A stretch of DNA of 64,000 nucleotides from Thalia democratica. Taxonomy: Eukaryota. Where the stretch lies: positions 60,574,001-60,638,000 of the forward strand of contig OZ241829.1 in the NCBI GenBank assembly GCA_965202585.1, in the 5' to 3' direction. The position numbers and the translations under genes are program-made. Positions 10,859-49,697 of this stretch are shown in pieces. Under the pieces are notes generated by a model, which was not told the DNA's origin, searched no databases, and worked only from the letters and a program-made list of their open reading frames with translations. Each line of letters starts with the position of its first letter. The stretch's first letter is position 1.

Positions 10859-12014
10859 TTTTTTCAGATTCTTCTTAATGAAGCAAAAACACTTCCAAAT
10901 CATAATGACTCATAAGTCCAGCAAACATCACCCAAGTACTCCCTAAACCTACAAAGTTAAATTTTATTAAAGTTCTAAATAAAACTATTCAAAGTTATTT
11001 ACAAATATATGTTGTGAGGCTTGATGACCGAAAGGTCTTCTCCACACCAATCCATTGACCATAGATGTGAACGTTCACATTTTTCTTTCTTTCTTTTCAT
11101 GGAAGTGTATTATAAAGCCCATTTTTAGTATGTAATGATGTTTGATAAAAATAATTGTTACCAATACATTATGTTTATAGTATACTAATCAATTAAAAGT
11201 TTTTTATCATTAATACTTTTTTAAACCTTCAAGGTAAGTTATATTTAAGAATTTAAAAATATATAAGCCTTAATATCTACTTAAAATTGCAACAAAGCAA
11301 TGATATAACATAAATATTCTTGCAAGGTCTTAATAACAATTTAATGGCAACTACTTAAAAAATTCTTAGAAAATTCAGTTTGTGTTCGTTTAAAGCCTTA
11401 AAAAAGGTATAGACAAAAGTTTATTGCAGTAGAGAGATGAGTGAGACTATTGGTTTTTTAACCATAAAAAATACTATATTACACATAATAAGTTTTCAGT
11501 AGTCTACACTATAAATAATACTTAACTGCAAAAATAAAACTTTGACAGGAGAAAACTGAATTAGATCTAGTTTTATGCATGAACTATTTTTATAGTAATT
11601 AAAATACTTTGATTGCATTTAGATTGTTGAACTTTTTTTTAATTTAAGTATATTAATTATGTTTTTTAAATAAAAAATTTAATATTGAATAGGTTTGTAC
11701 ATCACACTAATTCAGTAAATAAATAAAATATTATGAATTAAGTAAGATAAATGCTACAATAACGGTTACAAATTAAAAATTTAGTTTTTGTTATCATGAA
11801 AGTTTATTAAGTAAAAACAAAGCATCGAATAGTAAATGTTCTACATACAAATATTACTTATAAGTTACTCTAATTATTTTAACTTAATACTGAATAAAAT
11901 CATAAAAACTAAATGGTGCACACATACCATAATATATATTCGAAACAATTATACTAATTTTACACAGCAGTATTTAAAACTTGTTTAGAAATAAGACCAT
12001 AGTTAAGCAAAATT

Positions 12015-13055
12015 ATGACATCAAATGTCGCAAAGACAATTGCAAAACGCATCTCTGCAATGGGTGCAAACAAATTTGTTTTGTTTGATTGTGACACTGG
12101 AGCTGATGATGCAATTGCCCTTATGATGCTTCTCTCAGAATCAGCAAAGAAAAATGTAAAAACGGTTGCAATAACTTGTGTTGATGGAAACACTGCTTTA
12201 CCAAATGTTGTCATGAACAACTTAAGGCTGCTAAAACTTTATAACATGCTCGATGATGTTCCTGTTTATAGAGGTTGTAGTGAACCGTTGCTTCCACTTT
12301 CCTCTCATGGTGGTACTGGTTCTATCCACGGTTCAGATGGAATGGGTGGTCATCCAGAGTATGAACCCAGATCTGATCCAGAACTTCTGAAGCACGTCCA
12401 GGAGAAACCAGCAGCATGTGCAATAGTAGACTTGGCAAAAAAGTATGAGAATGAACTAACTATTGTTGCGACTGGGCCATTGACAAACTTGGCTGTTGCT
12501 TTAAAACTTGACCCAGATCTTCCTTCTAGAGTTAAAAATCTATACATAATGGGAGGAACTCGCGAAGGAGCTGGCAATGTGACTCCTGCTGCCGAGTTCA
12601 ATTTCTACGTTGATCCTGAATCTGCCCAAATTACTTTAATGAGCTTTTCACCAAAGTGCTTAACTTTTATTACAGATTATGGCTTCTGCAACAAGTTCTC
12701 TGTGCCAATGCAGTGGATTGAAAATGATTGGTTAGGAAATATTGCAACTGAAAAGCAAGGATTTGCCCACATGGCACTACAAACACTTATCAAGTTTTAT
12801 AAAGATAGATATGGAAACGCTTTTGGTTTTTCAATATGTGATGCGTACACTATGTCTACTGTCCTTGATACTACCATTGCCTGGAATCCTGTAGAATTTG
12901 ATGGTTTTGTGGAAACAGGGGGTGTTAAGTCAAGAGGACACCTTATTTTAAACCATACTCGTTCGAAACATGAAGGATTTAATGGTCCACTTGTGTTTTT
13001 TGACAATTTTGATTTAGATAAGTACAAAAAAATGCTTGTAAATTCTGTTGCATAA
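12015..13055 (+). CDS. Inosine-uridine-preferring nucleoside hydrolase family protein (intronless, 346 aa)
   Basis: Ca-binding DxDxxxDD motif (DCDTGADD), plus GN, HGxDG, TGPLTNLA, MGG..GN..PAAEFNF..DPE motifs. Uninterrupted ORF; AATAAA at 13086-13091. Confidence 0.95.
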   Translation: MTSNVAKTIAKRISAMGANKFVLFDCDTGADDAIALMMLLSESAKKNVKTVAITCVDGNTALPNVVMNNLRLLKLYNMLDDVPVYRGCSEPLLPLSSHGGTGSIHGSDGMGGHPEYEPRSDPELLKHVQEKPAACAIVDLAKKYENELTIVATGPLTNLAVALKLDPDLPSRVKNLYIMGGTREGAGNVTPAAEFNFYVDPESAQITLMSFSPKCLTFITDYGFCNKFSVPMQWIENDWLGNIATEKQGFAHMALQTLIKFYKDRYGNAFGFSICDAYTMSTVLDTTIAWNPVEFDGFVETGGVKSRGHLILNHTRSKHEGFNGPLVFFDNFDLDKYKKMLVNSVA

Positions 13056-23096: not shown

Positions 23097-25204
23097 TTAG
23101 ACTTGGCTAGTTTGAAACTGATGAAGCATGTTAGTTTCAGCTGTCGACTCTTCAACATTAGCAGAAGTCTCATAGAACTGGAAAGGTTGACCAGAAATGT
23201 GCGGTTGGGGCGTAGGTAACTGGTAACCTTGGTAACCGGCTACCTGGTAACTGGGTGGAGCATCATTAAGGGCAGCGTTTGACTCAGACACTGCGACTAG
23301 ACCATTCTCTGTATGTTCTTCACCGTCTACATTCAATTTATTTTTGTTAAGTAACCTAATAAATTTAAGCATATATTCTAATGATTTAAGATTAAGTTGA
23401 AGTTTTTTGATATATTTCATTAACTTTAAAATATTAACTGCTATACTAAAATATTTAAAATTTATCCAACAATAAAGTTTCAATAAAAGAGTTGTTCACA
23501 GGTTTACCTGTTAGTTCGAAGCTTAACTTATTTAAAATTTATTGCTTTTGAAAACTGTGTTACTATCAACCAAAATATATTAGAGTTATCGTATATTGTT
23601 AAGCTAGAAATTTTAAATATTACAGTTTCTAGTATTTTAACGACGCAGTTCAATTGAACAGAAAATGAAGGCTATTTAAAATAAATTTAAAATTTATCTT
23701 ATCAGAAAAAATACTTAAGTATATATTTATAACTAAGACAAGACTGTTATTTAATCACAAAGTTTTTTTAATAAACATGATTGAAGTAAGTTTTTCTTTT
23801 TGACCTATATCTGTCTTTAGCATATAAGTATAATGAACTATAGTTTTGTATTACCCGTTAGTGATTATTTATTTTTTAATAAACCAAAAAAGATTGTAGT
23901 ACTAATAAAATTGTGTTTTTCAACCAATACCACACAGATTTTAAGTTTTTAATTACGTAATAACTATTTAAGCTAATGAAAACCTTTAAAAGTAGTTGAA
24001 TTATAAATATTTCACATATTTAACAAGGTTTTTTACAGTTCTAAATAACAAAATAAAAGACACGAACAAATAACGAGAGATGGAAAAGAAACCTAGCTAA
24101 AAGAAAAAATTGTTTACTCCTTGAGTAATATTTCAAGTTTTTTTCCAGTACGAACTATCTTTTAATCTTAGCTACAATTTTCGTAACCAATAAACATGTT
24201 AACGGCTAACCATGAGCGTACTGAACCATTACAGCGCTAGCGGGATAATGCGGTTGCAGCTGCAACACTTGCGGCTGGTACTGACCGCTCATTGGCTGGA
24301 CATAAGAACCGTTGGACCCGTTGACATGACAATTATTCCAAGCTGACCCCGGCATGGGTTGCATTGATACAACGGATCCTTGTGGCTGAAAAAAAATACT
24401 TTTTAAAATTTTACCCAAATTGTAATTAGACTACCAATTCAAATAATTAACCTGATGGACCATCGAAGCAGCGCTGTTGCCATGGTAGCTGTTCGGAGCT
24501 ACAAAACCAGGACCAGGTCCTATCACTACAGAGTTCGCGTGAGGCACGTAGGCGGTAGGCTGCATTTGGCCACCATTGGTGAGTGCGTAAGTGTACATGG
24601 CTTGCTGACCGATAGCAGGAACGACTTGTAAGGATTGCTGTGGTACGATTTGCGACTGCATTTGGCTGGCCATCATTTGGTGATACTAGAAATATATGTT
24701 CAAAATTCAAGATTGCTAATATGTTTGCTAAGAAGACTTGAATATAAAAAAAATAACGTATAACTAATTTAACACAGAGAAACTTACTGCATTTTTAAAT
24801 AAGCAAGTACTTCGTAAATTGTTGTTATTGTGATATTAAATTCGTGTTTAACAAGTTTCAATTTTTTATTATCAGTGTTAACCTTATTGTTAATTTTCTT
24901 AATCAATAGTTTATTTGTTTACGTATAAAATTGTAAGATATTAACTTTTATTTTAATTATGTGAAATATGTTCAATCTTTAACCTCAACACCAAGATTAT
25001 AAAAATAGCTGGAATCACAGCTTGATGAGGGAATCTCCGGAGAACTTTCGTTGTGATTGTTAGCCGATCTTGCTTCATTGTTGCAAATGTTACTGTTACT
25101 CACACTCGTAGCTTGAATTTCGTCATGTTGATTCCATGCAGGGCAATTCGACGCTTCAAAGCTGTCACCACATTGATCTTCCAAGTTAGAATTAGTAGAA
25201 ACTC
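23097..25204 (-). CDS. OTUD4: OTUD4-like 3' exons (FYNLGV motif and P/Q-rich tail; stop at 23097)
   Basis: Four phase-consistent exons: 25204-24984, 24685-24452, 24385-24211 and 23326-23097. Confidence 0.85.
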
Positions 25205-43900: not shown

Positions 43901-46200
43901 TAAATAAATTTGTAGAATTTAAAACATTACAATCGACATTAATCAAAAAAAAAACGTATTTTTTAAAAAAGTTAGTAAATAAATAATTTAGACAAGCTGA
44001 AAAAAATATTTTGAAGGATATAACTTAAAATCTAGTTTAATTTTTTTTTAACATATTGGCAAATTTTATTAAAACATTTTTTTATATTTGGAATTTATCT
44101 ATTAAAATTTGAATTAGTTTTATTCAATTTTAAACTATACTTTTAAGAATTAATTGTTTGTTTTAACATAAATACAATAAATACAAGTGAATTCCCTTGA
44201 AACAATACAGTAATAGTCACGTAACTATAGCTGGACTTAACAAAAGAAATCACAAACTTGTTATAATTTTTACAATGACTATTGTTATATAATAAACGTT
44301 GTTGTAAATTTCTCAACTTTTAAACAAGTTTGAAAGCTAAAGAGTTTATTCTAATATTAACTGGTAAGTACTTCATTGATTAAGATAAGTACAACCATTT
44401 TTTCTTGCAAATTAAAAAAGTTATTGCTTGAAAAACATTTCTTTAAGAGCAAGTCCGTCATTTAATACTCATTTAAAAATCACTACTGTGTATTGTAAAC
44501 TGAATTGAGGACACTTCATAAAATATTATAAATCAGATCAGTTTACTTGTTCTGCTTAACTGTTTTCATGCTAAAAAATACCTTAAAATTTCTGTATAGT
44601 CCGCCGGATGGGCTTGCGGGTCATACGTTACCCACCTCTGGGATTAAGACAACAATAAGTTATTCATTAACAACTTTGCAAATAATTGTAAAAATATTTT
44701 ATTTAGTAAATGATTAAATAGACTTTGTTCAAGACTTGATTAAATACTATAGTTTGTTTATTATTAGAGCTAACTTGAACAAACTTAATGCATTGTATTC
44801 TTTTAAAACAAACACTAAGTTTCAAGTATTGCCTTAGCATGGTGACGTAATAATGTAAACCTATACAAACATCAAACAAAAGGTTTTTTATGTAGCAAAA
44901 AAAAATTATGTACAAATCTAAGTCCAGCTTCAAAAAGCTGCTACTAATTTGCATATATCAAAACAAAACTTTTTTTTGTATATTTTAATTTTTCTGAGCT
45001 ATACTCTTACCCTACCCTTAACCCACCTTACCCAAACATATAGCAAATTAATCAAAAAAAGTTTTTATTTAAAATTTTATGAAAATATCTTATTTGGTTA
45101 TACTCAAATTAGTTGCAGATTTTTAAAGCTACCCCAAGTATATACAATTTTAACAAACGCAACTAGTCACAAACATTTTAAAGCTAATAATAATCGTACG
45201 TTTTATCGTAGTTTATTTTTTGTATTAAAGCATCAAACTTAAAAAAAAACAGTTTTTAAGTTTACTATTACAGCTCGTAAAGTTATTGTTGTAACTTTTT
45301 TATTAAATGGTTTGTTTTAAAAATTATATTAACAAAATAAAGTCTTAGCGTATTTAAGTAGAAAATAAGAACATAAAGTTTTTTGCAAAAAGTTTAATAC
45401 AATAATCAAAACAATAAAGAAAAAGAGTGGTTTTCTATGTTTCGTTTAAGTAAAACTTATGGTAAATAAAGAAGTAAATAAAGAAAAAAATTTAAAAGAC
45501 ATTTCAATTTTATTAAAATTTTTTGTTCGTTAATCCATACTTTAGTTATAAACTTTAAACAAAATATTTAATCTATTGTAACAAACTAACTAAGTTAAGA
45601 AATTCTTAATCTAAACAATTTAGGTAAGGTCTGAAACGATTAAAACAGAAAAAAAGTTAATCAATAAAATTACAGGTTATGAATTTGTACTTGTATTTAT
45701 TTAAACATTAAAGTTATAAAGTTTAGGTTTCAAGCCATAATCCTATAAAGAGTTTATATTTATAAAACTGCAAAAACTTGCAAAATTATGAATTTAAGCA
45801 GTATAACTGTCAAAAATAAATTTTACATACACAATTAAATAGTTGTAAAAAACATTACAAAGTTTAAAAATTGTATAAAAACACTGCTTTAGACTTAAAG
45901 TAGATCAAAACTAAATAACAAAAAAAAACATTGAATTTTAAAACATATTAAAAACTAATCTTTAAATAAGAGTTAATAAATGTTTTACATAATATTTTCT
46001 TAACACTTGCGTAAAGTAATTATAATAAAAAATCTAATTGCAAATAATATATTTACTCTTGTACTATTTCTGACGCTTCTAAATTGTAAAATATAAAAAT
46101 TCATTTAGTACCTTAATTCAATAATGAAAAATATAAGAAATAAAGTAACTATTGAACCAAAACAGTTTGTAAATGAAGCGTAGTTACACGGTAGTAAAGT

Positions 46201-46983
46201 TTATTGAACAAAAAAACCCGCAAAATCTTCCAACGTTAGATACTTGTGAACTTGATACGCGCCTAATGCTATCGAAGCCGCGATCAACGCGCAAGAAATC
46301 TTCACCTCCCTCTTTATCCTCGCTCCCAACAGGTCCTTGCTAAAGAACTCGGCGACGTACGTCGAGTTCTTGTTCTTGTGTGGGAACGGACATTCAGGCA
46401 CCGGCACATTCAGAAACCGGCACAGCGGCTCCCACCCTTCCTTCAAATCAAACACGAGCAGTCGATCCTTAGGAGCGTTCTTCAGAACGTTCTGGTTGTG
46501 TCTCCGGTACGCTTTCCTCAGCAGCTGCTCGGGCATGTTGCCATACCCGAACCACGGCTCAACCGCGTACCATCCCTCCGTCACCACGTGAACCAGCCAC
46601 AAAAAGTCCTGCATCGCCCTCAAGGACGGCGACAGCATCTTCATTACTCTCAGCTTGAAGCTCTGCCTGGACATTATCATTTTCTTGCGGCTCGCCCACC
46701 ACTCGTCCTCGTCCCTCTGACAGAAAACGATCTTGGCGTCGGGGAAGGCCCCGAGAATTTCCTCCCAGAAGTGGAAAGATGGGATGTCGGTGACCGAGTC
46801 CACCTCCTTATACATCTGGTAAAAGTCCTCCTTTCCGCCTCCGAGCTTGAATATCTTCAGCCACCTCTCCCTTTCATATTTGTAGTTCTCCTGGACGTCC
46901 CAGTTTTCGTATCCGAGTAACGTGAAGGCCTCCCGCATCGTCTTGGTGCCGCACTTCGAGTAGCCGGCGAATATGACTTTCAT
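46201..46983 (-). CDS. Sulfotransferase, Sulfotransfer_4-type P-loop family, with a C-terminal hydrophobic segment (intronless, 260 aa)
   Basis: 5'-PSB-like AGYSKCGT, DAK..F.QR..DEWWAS (3'-PB-like R/S), YRRHN..V...PKDRLLVFDLKEGWEPLCRFLNVPVPECPFPHKN; tail ISCALIAASIALGAY. Confidence 0.93.
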   Translation of the reverse strand: MKVIFAGYSKCGTKTMREAFTLLGYENWDVQENYKYERERWLKIFKLGGGKEDFYQMYKEVDSVTDIPSFHFWEEILGAFPDAKIVFCQRDEDEWWASRKKMIMSRQSFKLRVMKMLSPSLRAMQDFLWLVHVVTEGWYAVEPWFGYGNMPEQLLRKAYRRHNQNVLKNAPKDRLLVFDLKEGWEPLCRFLNVPVPECPFPHKNKNSTYVAEFFSKDLLGARIKREVKISCALIAASIALGAYQVHKYLTLEDFAGFFVQ

Positions 46984-49697
46984 TTCGAGTTTTTTTAAAT
47001 AGTTTTTCTACAATGATTTTTTTCTTAATATTTATTGTTTAATAGATGGTCAAATAATTTACTTTTTTCGGTAGTTACATTTTTAATGCGGAAATTTGAA
47101 ACTTATGTGTTGTGACGTTATATGGTTACATGAGATCGGTTTTTTGTTAGAGTTGTCCGTTGCCGAGATTAAATAAAAAACAAGACTAGTAAAAAGAAAA
47201 AAAAATCGTCTGGTATATAATTTTTTCAGCATACAGGTAATTATTAGGAAAAACAACTTAGCTACATTTAGTTAATTGAAAAAAAATTAGTTTTAACACA
47301 AAACAACTCAATATTATTAAGTTTTAAGATAAACCAAAAAAAAAACCATTTGCTATTAGTACTTAAATTAAACGATTAAACTTAAATAAGTTTTTTTTTT
47401 TATAAATTGCTTTTTTTAAAGAGGATTATTTTATTTTTATTAGAAATAACTCAACTGGTTATTTTAATCTATTCAATAAAACTAAATAATTATGAATTGC
47501 GTTTACTCTTGTTCATAACAAAAAAATAACTTTAATGTAAAAAACTTTAAAAAATAACTATATGTGTTATTTAAAAAAAAAAACTACTCAATTGTTGATT
47601 ATTGCACTAAAATGTTTCACACAGCGCGATGATTACTTACGAAGAAACATCTAACTGTAAGTGTATCTAATGTAAAGTTTATGAAAAGCATTTTATTTAT
47701 TGTTATTGTGACTTAAAATATTAAAATAATAATTTATAATTTTATTAACACTATGAATGAAATATTAAGTTATAGTTTTATGAGAAGAGTTTTAAATTAA
47801 ATTATCAATAAATGACCAAGTTATTTTAGATTAGTAAAACAGTAAAGAATGCGTGATATCAGAACTGTTTGCTAGACACCGTTACAAAAAATGATTTTTA
47901 ATAAGTTTTAAAATATCAACCATTTGCTTGATATACACTAAAATTAAATTAATTAATTTTGAACTATATTTCATAACAAACTTATCTTTTTGTAGACAAT
48001 GTTATAAGCTTAACTATCTTAAAAATATTTTAAGTTAAAAAGTATTTATTTCGTAAACACATAGGAAAAAATCTTTTTTTGAATAGCTTTTCAAACTAAA
48101 AAGTCAAAAAACTTGTAGAAAATTTGTTGCAATAATTGTAAGCTACTGCGAAATAAAAGTACAGCATAAACTACACTAAATATATATTAAAAAAAATTAT
48201 TACCGTTTTAATATTAGCACAGCTACAACATAGCGATAAAAATGTGTAAAGTCTAAACTCAAATGCATGCAAATTATCTTGTTTACTTGAAATATAAAAA
48301 CAATAGGTGTTTTTTGGGTTTGTGTTATCGTAAACAAAACAAAGAACTAAATATCTAAATAACGTGGCGATAGTTAAAATTTTTTGATATGCGACTAAGT
48401 TGTAGTACAAGTAATTTAGATAATTTAATTCTATGTAAAGTCAATACATTTTTGATTTTAATTAATATTTGTTAAACATAAAAATAAATTTTATGACACT
48501 TTAACAAATTGCAGTTCTACTTAAACAAAGTTTTCAGTTACCTTTACTTAACATAGTTAATAATTAAATAGGTATTATTTTCAGGTAGTGTTTAGTTTTT
48601 ATGCATGTTAATCATGCATTCAACTATTTATTGATAATAAAAAATATAAATTTACCTTATAAAACAAACTCGTTTGGCTTAAAATAAAACTATCTAGTTT
48701 TTTAAAGTTTTACACGTTTTACCTTTTAAGAAACCTAAAGCAAAAATAGATATTATCTTTGAAAAAAAAAAGTAATTTAAAATGTTTAACGAAAAAGAAC
48801 TACAGTACAACTATTTTATACTAACTGTAATATTTGTAAGTGATGTAGTATATAGTTTAAAGAAAGGTAACTAAGAGCCTCTTGTATGTTTAATATTAAA
48901 ACGGAGTGGTTTACTAAAACCATTTAATGGGTTACACAGCAATTTAAATTGTAAAAGTTCAAATTCCTTCAACTCAAACTCTAAGAAAAATGTTGTAGAA
49001 TAAAAATATTAAATATAAAAAGTGATGTGTACTTGAAAAAAGTTAAAAATCTATTGTAAATATAGTTACTTAGATATTGATGGTAAAAAACAATATATTG
49101 TAATTTATTTTCAATCAAACAGTTCAAAGTTCTCGACTTAATAAACTTTAAGGAATCTATTTATTATTTATTTTTACAGTTTATTATTAACAAAACAATG
49201 TTTTACTCCTATATTGGGATATAGGAGATCATCAGTTGTTATAAACAAGTCTGAAAAAAGTTTTTGAACAAAATAAATGGGAGTTATGTAAAAATATTAA
49301 ATAAAACAAAGTGAATTTATTGAGCTTATGGTTTAAAAACTTTTAGTTTAAGAACATTAACATAAAGTTGCAAAACAAAAAAAAATTTAATGGAAAACTT
49401 ATTAACTCCCAGAACGATAAAAATAAGTTGCAAAACTAGCTACAAAATTTAAAGAAAAAACACAAAACCTCTCAGGACGACAAAAAATATTAAAAATTGT
49501 TTAAAAGAACTGTTTTTTGAATTCAGAAAATTTCAGGAAAAGGTTGATAATTGAGAGAATTAACGTTACTAAAGTTTAAAATGTTTTTACATTATAATAA
49601 ATTAGTATATTTGGTTTAACTGTTTAAAAATTTAGGTTGAATCGTTTGCAAACAAACGATCCTAGTGAAATAACTTCGCAGGAATATAAATAAAAAG

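Follow-up and report, generated by a model that had tools for sequence, protein, structure and literature searches.

A sharply bounded GC-rich sulfotransferase gene in the AT-rich genome of the salp Thalia democratica is a host gene with GC bias confined to third codon positions

How does a single open reading frame (ORF) come to stand as a sharply bounded GC-rich island in a genome that is otherwise extremely AT-rich? The question is raised by a sulfotransferase gene of Thalia democratica located in a stretch of 64,000 nucleotides (assembly GCA_965202585.1, contig OZ241829.1, positions 60,574,001 to 60,638,000 of the forward strand), which we call the window. The genome of this tunicate, 790.7 Mb with a GC content of 25.3%, is the most GC-poor among tunicates (PMC13746493), and the window itself has a GC content of 25.2%. 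A first-pass annotation, made from the letters of the window alone, had described the island and offered several explanations: recent horizontal acquisition from a GC-rich donor, translational selection or GC-biased gene conversion in a multigene family, and an assembly chimera; it also held a vertical origin to be plausible. Our analysis points to a vertically inherited host gene, a probably retro-derived copy with a coding-only bias at third codon positions that would be due to selection at synonymous sites and now appears to be decaying. We give this explanation a probability of about 0.8.

The island coincides with the single-exon coding sequence (CDS) of the sulfotransferase (46201–46983, minus strand), which is intact from ATG to TAA and encodes 260 amino acids. 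Its GC content is 0.525, and the values for codon positions 1, 2 and 3 (GC1, GC2 and GC3) are 0.49, 0.34 and 0.74. The first-pass description of the island held in every point that we recounted. At the start of the ORF, 81 of 100 codons end in G or C, exactly the number given before. The GC-rich tract begins at the ATG and fades at its end: in bins of 20 codons GC3 stays at 0.6–0.9 through codon 240, and in the final 20 codons it is 0.35. The flanks are at host composition, with a GC content of 0.17 in the 75 nt upstream of the ATG, 0.25 in the 130 nt after the stop codon and 0.19–0.21 farther away. When the window is divided into 1-kb bins, the sulfotransferase bin has the maximum GC content (0.46, with a window average of 0.25). 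The ratio of observed to expected CpG is 1.10 in the ORF and 0.70 in the window. The ORF flanks, inspected by eye, show no terminal repeats, and neither a target-site duplication nor a trace of poly(A) is visible in them, as had been noted earlier.

The AT-rich sequence on both sides of the CDS belongs to the same exon. A 1007-nt contig (L021, JGI sample 3300019144) is colinear with window positions 46071–47056 in a single block with 91.9% identity, and this block takes in AT-rich sequence at both ends of the CDS. Contigs of paralogous genes from the same sample (L058) and from sister samples (L057 and L059) match the genome as four separate blocks that skip the introns. Since these contigs are spliced relative to the genome, the assemblies represent mRNA, and L021 is a transcript. 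Thus, the orthologue of the window gene is transcribed in a close relative, where it is also unspliced. The block defines a minimal 5′ untranslated region (UTR) at 46984–47056 (minus strand, GC 0.17) and a minimal 3′ UTR at 46071–46200 (minus strand, GC 0.25). The 5′ UTR is also covered by the metatranscriptomic RNA run X9. Within the stretch to which contigs of public runs were aligned (45700–47500), matches of this run are restricted to 46196–47203, with about 93–95% identity. Upstream of the minimal 5′ UTR, about 100 nt from the ATG, a sister-species RNA contig carries 152 other letters in place of 24 nt at window 47066–47091, and beyond the replaced stretch it is 98% identical to the window over 47091–47203. 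This difference is either an indel in a longer 5′ UTR or a sign of a conserved upstream element.

We compared the composition of the island with that of other host genes. The nucleoside hydrolase located 34 kb away (12003–13052, plus strand) is also intronless; its frame has 350 codons from stop to stop and encodes a protein of the inosine-uridine type (Pfam E 3e-72). The two genes were contrasted already in the first-pass annotation, and the contrast turned out to be limited to one codon position: GC1, GC2 and GC3 are 0.49, 0.39 and 0.29 in the nucleoside hydrolase versus 0.49, 0.34 and 0.74 in the sulfotransferase. Arginine in the sulfotransferase is encoded not mainly by CGN codons, and AGG accounts for 8 of 15. 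The relative synonymous codon usage (RSCU) of the sulfotransferase correlates with that of two host actin-related genes with GC3 of 0.74 and 0.90 (r 0.67–0.76), versus r of about −0.4 with low-GC3 host genes. Although the UTRs share an exon and an mRNA with the GC3-rich CDS, their GC content is 0.17–0.27. Thus, the island is a third-position feature bounded by the reading frame, and not a piece of foreign composition. As a possible cause of the high GC3, we also considered avoidance of motifs resembling polyadenylation signals. AATAAA and ATTAAA are absent from the sulfotransferase, while the flanks contain 7.8 of them per kb; however, the GC3-poor nucleoside hydrolase is equally free of these motifs, and this cause was rejected.

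To place the gene among its relatives, we searched the genome (801.8 Mb) with the window protein. The search gave 114 exon-level matches at more than 30 loci. Nearly all loci of the family are split near residues 85, 131 and 167, so that the usual gene model has four exons. The sole other copy in a single ORF is located at C2:70871322-70872065, and its product is 70% identical to the window protein. Several small unplaced contigs duplicate chromosome loci with equal or near-equal scores (C1087:6944-7213 and C8:48114830-48115099; C827 and C5:67.70 Mb; C598 and C1:68.31 Mb; C792 and C5:62.59 Mb; C981 and C8:13.56 Mb). These contigs are probably uncollapsed haplotigs, which would inflate counts of gene families. 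In the protein database, the best match is the protein P0001 encoded by L021 (90% identity). The next matches, with 40–51% identity, are environmental transcripts and ascidian proteins (Clavelina, Styela, Ciona, Phallusia), and bacterial and fungal proteins follow at about 30%. A maximum-likelihood tree of 78 proteins with SH-aLRT supports groups the window protein with P0001 (99); this pair is sister to the C2 copy together with P0002 (99), and P0003 joins next (98). This group then joins the cluster of four-exon genes at C5:33.0-33.25 Mb (92), and a tunicate clade (99) encloses all of these proteins, with a branch of 1.5 changes per site between it and the fungi and bacteria. The family of small-molecule sulfotransferases is thus greatly expanded and tunicate-specific, and the vertical origin that had been thought plausible is borne out by a gene that nests among host paralogues. 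P0002/L022 was tried as a sister-species orthologue of the C2 copy; its synonymous divergence (dS) from that copy is 1.2, against 0.16–0.22 for the other cross-species pairs. Its source is probably a species farther away, and it was dropped from the rate comparison. The two intron-free copies also differ in CpG content: the observed to expected ratio is 1.10 in the window gene and 1.16 in its orthologue, with 0.55 in the C2 copy (L042:5323-6114) and 0.42 in the P0002 transcript. It is possible that the window gene and the C2 copy differ in germline methylation.

The absence of introns is a derived state, which had not been recognized before. In the Clavelina gene encoding P0014, one intron follows K84, another lies near residue 132 and a third follows Q168, and spliced transcripts place the introns of the salp paralogues at the same three positions. 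Introns common to Clavelina and the salp paralogues are ancestral. The window gene lacks all three: the first after codon 84, between FPDAK and IVF (46731–46732, minus strand), the second near codon 131, and the third after codon 168, before NAPKD (46479–46480, minus strand). The C2 sister copy lacks them too. Apparently, the gene is retrogene-like, with all introns of the family lost, a position nested among intron-bearing paralogues and a location away from them (C5:60.6 Mb for the window gene and C2:70.9 Mb for its sister copy, with the nearest four-exon cluster at C5:33.0-33.25 Mb). The simplest and most likely reading is a single retroposition of a spliced mRNA of a four-exon family member, which would have removed the three introns at once. 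A duplication of the intron-free copy would then have given the C5 and C2 copies, and both events most likely preceded the split from the sister species.

Another route to the same structure is loss of the introns in place, by cDNA-mediated gene conversion or by stepwise deletion, with a rise of GC3 that was unrelated to it. The lack of a poly(A) tail and of a target-site duplication fits this route, as does the fact that the window gene shares chromosome C5 with its nearest four-exon relatives; besides, other intronless genes nearby are not GC3-rich. However, three introns are gone in both sister copies, one of which lies 27 Mb from the C5 cluster and the other on another chromosome. The GC3 of the sister four-exon cluster is 0.30–0.38, which places the rise of GC3 on the same branch as the intron loss. 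We therefore consider loss in place unlikely and prefer retroposition.

What raised GC3 in this gene can be approached through its intron-bearing relatives. In 11 clean four-exon paralogues, the GC3 of the gene covers a range of 0.29–0.60, whereas their introns all have a GC content of 0.21–0.24; the correlation between intron GC and exon GC3 is negative and not significant (r = −0.48). In the GC3-rich paralogues, exon 1 (about 80 codons) has a GC3 of 0.61–0.74, several reaching 0.71–0.74, exon 3 (22–34 codons) has 0.22–0.50 and exon 4 (64–94 codons) has 0.34–0.71. Since a GC3 of 0.74 is already found in the first exons of the family, the island stands out only because it is uninterrupted. Among the 11 genes, the long outer exons have a mean GC3 of 0.50 versus 0.38 for the short inner ones (Wilcoxon p 0.01); this test, made before exon overlaps were trimmed, is only suggestive, since the genes are related. 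After trimming, the dip of GC3 at splice junctions is modest, 0.54 versus 0.71 on the donor side and 0.39 versus about 0.58 on the acceptor side (the untrimmed estimate was inflated by tblastn matches running into introns). At the three former intron positions of the window gene, GC3 over the surrounding 16 codons is 0.88, 0.81 and 0.62. The whole intron-free clade has a GC3 of 0.62–0.82, versus 0.30–0.38 in its nearest four-exon relatives.

Since introns and UTRs remain AT-rich, regional processes such as isochore-like drift or ordinary GC-biased gene conversion, which should raise their GC as well, are disfavoured, and selection at synonymous sites is the best remaining candidate for the cause of the bias. 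Such selection would raise GC3 through codon optimality and/or the GC requirement of unspliced mRNAs, and in a gene lacking introns the bias would run unbroken for about 720 nt and look like a sharp island. A more specific proposal is that synonymous GC in Thalia is set by splicing architecture, so that coding sequence distant from introns (single-exon genes, long first exons) is held GC3-rich, and short internal exons and codons near junctions drift to the AT-rich baseline. We regard this proposal as tentative and rather doubtful.

GC-biased gene conversion, acting within the family or at a local recombination hotspot and requiring no selection on codons, was weighed as another cause. The family is large and partly clustered, and GC3 varies widely among paralogues and between two species. 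Moreover, plots of the effective number of codons against GC3 in salps track the mutational curve towards high GC3 (PMC13746493). However, the enrichment ends at the start and stop codons despite the presence of the UTRs in the same exon, the introns of GC3-rich paralogues still have a GC content of 0.21–0.24, and second codon positions are not raised. Since dS to the nearest paralogue exceeds 2, a recent conversion partner is lacking. We know of no conversion process that is limited to third codon positions. Of the family-level causes suggested in the first-pass annotation, the multigene family is real, while gene conversion fits its AT-rich introns and UTRs poorly, and we find this cause quite improbable. 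Selection at synonymous sites thus keeps its place as the preferred, though unproven, cause.

To follow the bias over time, we compared the window genome with transcripts of the sister species, counting third-position differences between A or T (W) and G or C (S). In the window gene, dS is 0.156, the ratio of nonsynonymous to synonymous divergence (dN/dS) is 0.23, and GC3 is 0.75 here and 0.83 in the relative; the ratio of sites with W here and S there to the reverse is 21:1. The paralogue L023 (dS 0.162, dN/dS 0.19, GC3 0.34 here and 0.32 in the relative) gives a ratio of 9:15, and the paralogue L024 (dS 0.216, dN/dS 0.18, GC3 0.38 in both) gives 13:13. Thus, divergence is similar in all three genes, and the directional third-position change is found in the GC3-rich window gene alone. 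The sulfotransferase protein as a whole is under purifying selection. A second observation comes from the public run X2, in which two contigs of equal length cover 46237–46372; one is identical to the window and the other has 4 differences, which means that the gene is heterozygous in the X2 sample. At 2 of these 4 sites, the G/C allele is that of the relative. Together with the 21:1 ratio, this match points to new A/T alleles and to an island that is probably eroding in the window's species, under AT-biased mutation. We also tried to polarise the differences by paralogues, taking as outgroups the C2 copy, its relative and P0003. The outcome, 16 S>W changes in the window gene and 24 W>S changes in the relative, was ambiguous; given the saturation of synonymous sites and the bias that AT-richer outgroups bring into parsimony, we discarded it.

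The same data bear on the proposal that the gene was recently acquired from a GC-rich bacterium, fungus or protist. The sharp GC step at the ends of the ORF, the lack of introns and the undepleted CpG would all suit such an origin, and bacteria and fungi do have Sulfotransfer_4 proteins, with an identity of about 30%. However, the closest relatives are host paralogues and tunicate proteins (40–51% identity), and the window gene is nested within them, grouping with tunicates when bacterial and fungal proteins are included in the tree. The sister species has an orthologue with the same AT-rich UTRs and ordinary divergence. Only GC3 is raised, whereas GC1, GC2 and the choice of AGG for arginine are host-like, RSCU fits that of the GC3-rich host genes, and first exons of intron-bearing paralogues have an equal GC3. 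Thus, the closest relatives do not lie outside the host lineage, neither a donor-type composition at all codon positions nor a donor-type choice of codons was found, and recent horizontal transfer, refuted by these observations, retains only a very slight probability. Finally, the idea that a GC-rich fragment was misjoined into AT-rich DNA, as an assembly chimera or contaminant, has nothing but the abrupt change of composition in its favour and is practically eliminated by contigs of two samples from different studies that bridge both junctions with 0–1 mismatches, and by the mRNA contig of a related species that does the same. In run X1, possibly the source sample, a single 5348-nt contig spans 45700–47500 with 1 mismatch; in X2, which differs from X1 in organism label, sample and study, contigs over 45945–46266 and 46343–47500 have no mismatches, and each crosses one composition junction. 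The island is authentic genomic DNA.

Several points weigh against our explanation of the gene as a retro-derived host copy with a selected and decaying bias. The flanks, as seen by eye, carry neither a poly(A) tract nor a target-site duplication, so that the argument for retroposition comes down to the simultaneous loss of three introns and the tree. The missing scars are weak evidence, because their erasure is expected with a paralogue dS above 2 and flanks of 20% GC. Simple translational selection, one of the causes first suggested, fits poorly, since the conventional actins of the host (GC3 0.41–0.63) are less biased than the actin-related genes (0.74–0.90). A strict rule by which genes without introns require GC does not hold either, since intronless genes with lower GC3 exist, namely the nucleoside hydrolase (0.29) and an ORF of the LplA type (0.49). 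The sample of host genes was small and consisted of the sulfotransferase paralogues, the actin family and the ORFs of the window. Polarisation of W/S changes by paralogues is unreliable at dS above 2. The RNA data are all from a relative, 5–8% diverged from the window's own species.

It was shown previously that in Thalia democratica the GC content of coding sequences is about 17 points above the genomic one and that the GC3 peak is low, broad and rounded (PMC13746493). The window gene is one clear example of this heterogeneity: it is real but ordinary in kind, since codon-level GC bias is common in the Thalia genome. In contrast to that study, which gives species-level summaries only, we show for one family a bias limited to the CDS, a mosaic of exons within paralogues and a directional decay. 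In human, GC content is highest in single-exon genes and in first exons, and the synonymous GC of functional retrogenes is above that of their parents (Mordstein et al. 2020, PMC7181179). The salp gene resembles these retrogenes: it is an intron-free derivative of a spliced family in an AT-rich neighbourhood, its synonymous GC (0.74) is far above that of its nearest intron-bearing relatives (0.30–0.38), and here, too, GC peaks in single-exon copies and in first exons. Unlike the retrogenes of that study, the window gene has no retroposition scars left. The contrast is much larger than in mammals and occurs in an invertebrate chordate with 25% GC; however, it is not universal, as the intronless genes with a GC3 of 0.29 and 0.49 demonstrate. 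If synonymous GC were indeed set by splicing architecture, the retrogene would be a natural experiment in which GC3 rose over the former junctions and then decayed in one species, and the idea that unspliced mammalian mRNAs need GC would apply, with an effect of far larger size, to an invertebrate chordate as well.

These results remove a false candidate for horizontal transfer and suggest how GC islands in this genome should be read, namely as CDS-bounded third-position features of host genes and not as foreign DNA. What remains of interest is the cause of the GC3 bias across the genome. For this purpose, the family is a compact test set for the upkeep of GC-ending codons against extreme AT mutation pressure: it has single-exon and four-exon members, a GC3 range of 0.30–0.82, an intron GC that stays flat and a sister species with which to compare it, and the effect of intron loss can be tested in it.

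The encoded protein belongs to Pfam family PF17784 (Sulfotransfer_4; E 1.4e-56, 192.2 bits with a cut-off of 22.8), with residues 2–208 matching profile positions 1–214 of 215. A sequence search for solved relatives found the bacterial SgdX2 (PDB 8y9p, E 9e-24) and SmSULT-OR, the Schistosoma oxamniquine resistance protein (PDB 4mua, E 2e-18). The match to both is nearly full-length, and the salp protein keeps the G-x-x-K/R-x-G-T phosphosulfate loop and the R-D..W motif. In the alignment to 8y9p, the loop, which binds the 5′-phosphosulfate of 3′-phosphoadenosine 5′-phosphosulfate (PAPS), corresponds to residues 7–15, G-Y-S-K-C-G-T-K-T (46939–46965, minus strand), and the motif for the 3′-phosphate of PAPS to residues 89–95, Q-R-D-E-D-E-W (46699–46719, minus strand), opposite V-R-D-P-V-Q-W. 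Nearly full-length matches together with the conserved motifs imply a PAPS-dependent small-molecule sulfotransferase fold and, as judged from sequence, the corresponding predicted activity. Unlike SgdX2 and SmSULT-OR, to which identity is only about 30%, tunicate proteins have an extra C-terminal hydrophobic segment. In the window protein, it is moderately hydrophobic (residues 229–243; 46255–46299, minus strand) and may be a tail anchor: the best 18-residue Kyte-Doolittle mean, 1.49 at residues 229–246, is borderline, and the equivalent segment of the Clavelina protein is more clearly hydrophobic. DNA and protein alignments show that a derived deletion of 7 nt, just after codon 248, has shifted the frame of the C-terminal tail (46201–46242, minus strand). 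The ORF remains open, and the last 11 codons are altered relative to the orthologue and the C2 paralogue, which share the HKYGLP frame. The X2 contig that covers the tail region (45945–46266) is identical to the window. A literature search found no characterised tunicate member of this sulfotransferase family. Sulfated metabolites are known from tunicates, and one may speculate that the tunicate-specific expansion is related to them.

Some neighbouring genes are also of interest. Actin-like exons at C5:33236571-33238830 (minus strand) adjoin the sulfotransferase cluster at C5:33.24 Mb. The LplA-type ORF mentioned above is located about 500 nt upstream of the intron-free C2 copy, on the same strand (L042:3715-4800, plus strand, which corresponds to C2:70869715-70870800); it is intronless, has 362 codons and encodes a catalytic domain of the lipoyl ligase A/B type (E 1.5e-54). 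Protein-kinase domains were also observed, more than 100 of them complete, each in one open frame of 300–470 codons and many in tandem arrays; they lie at C8:12.3-17.8 Mb, C8:53.5-53.8 Mb, C6:13.4-13.7 Mb and C6:67.5-68.0 Mb, among other places. Expansions of single-exon genes thus appear to be common in the Thalia democratica genome. The second compositional bump of the window, at 24209–24794 (minus strand), consists of open frames in which Gln, Pro and Met abound and which have a GC content of 0.43–0.50 and a GC3 of 0.36–0.54; these frames are probably an exon of a low-complexity protein.

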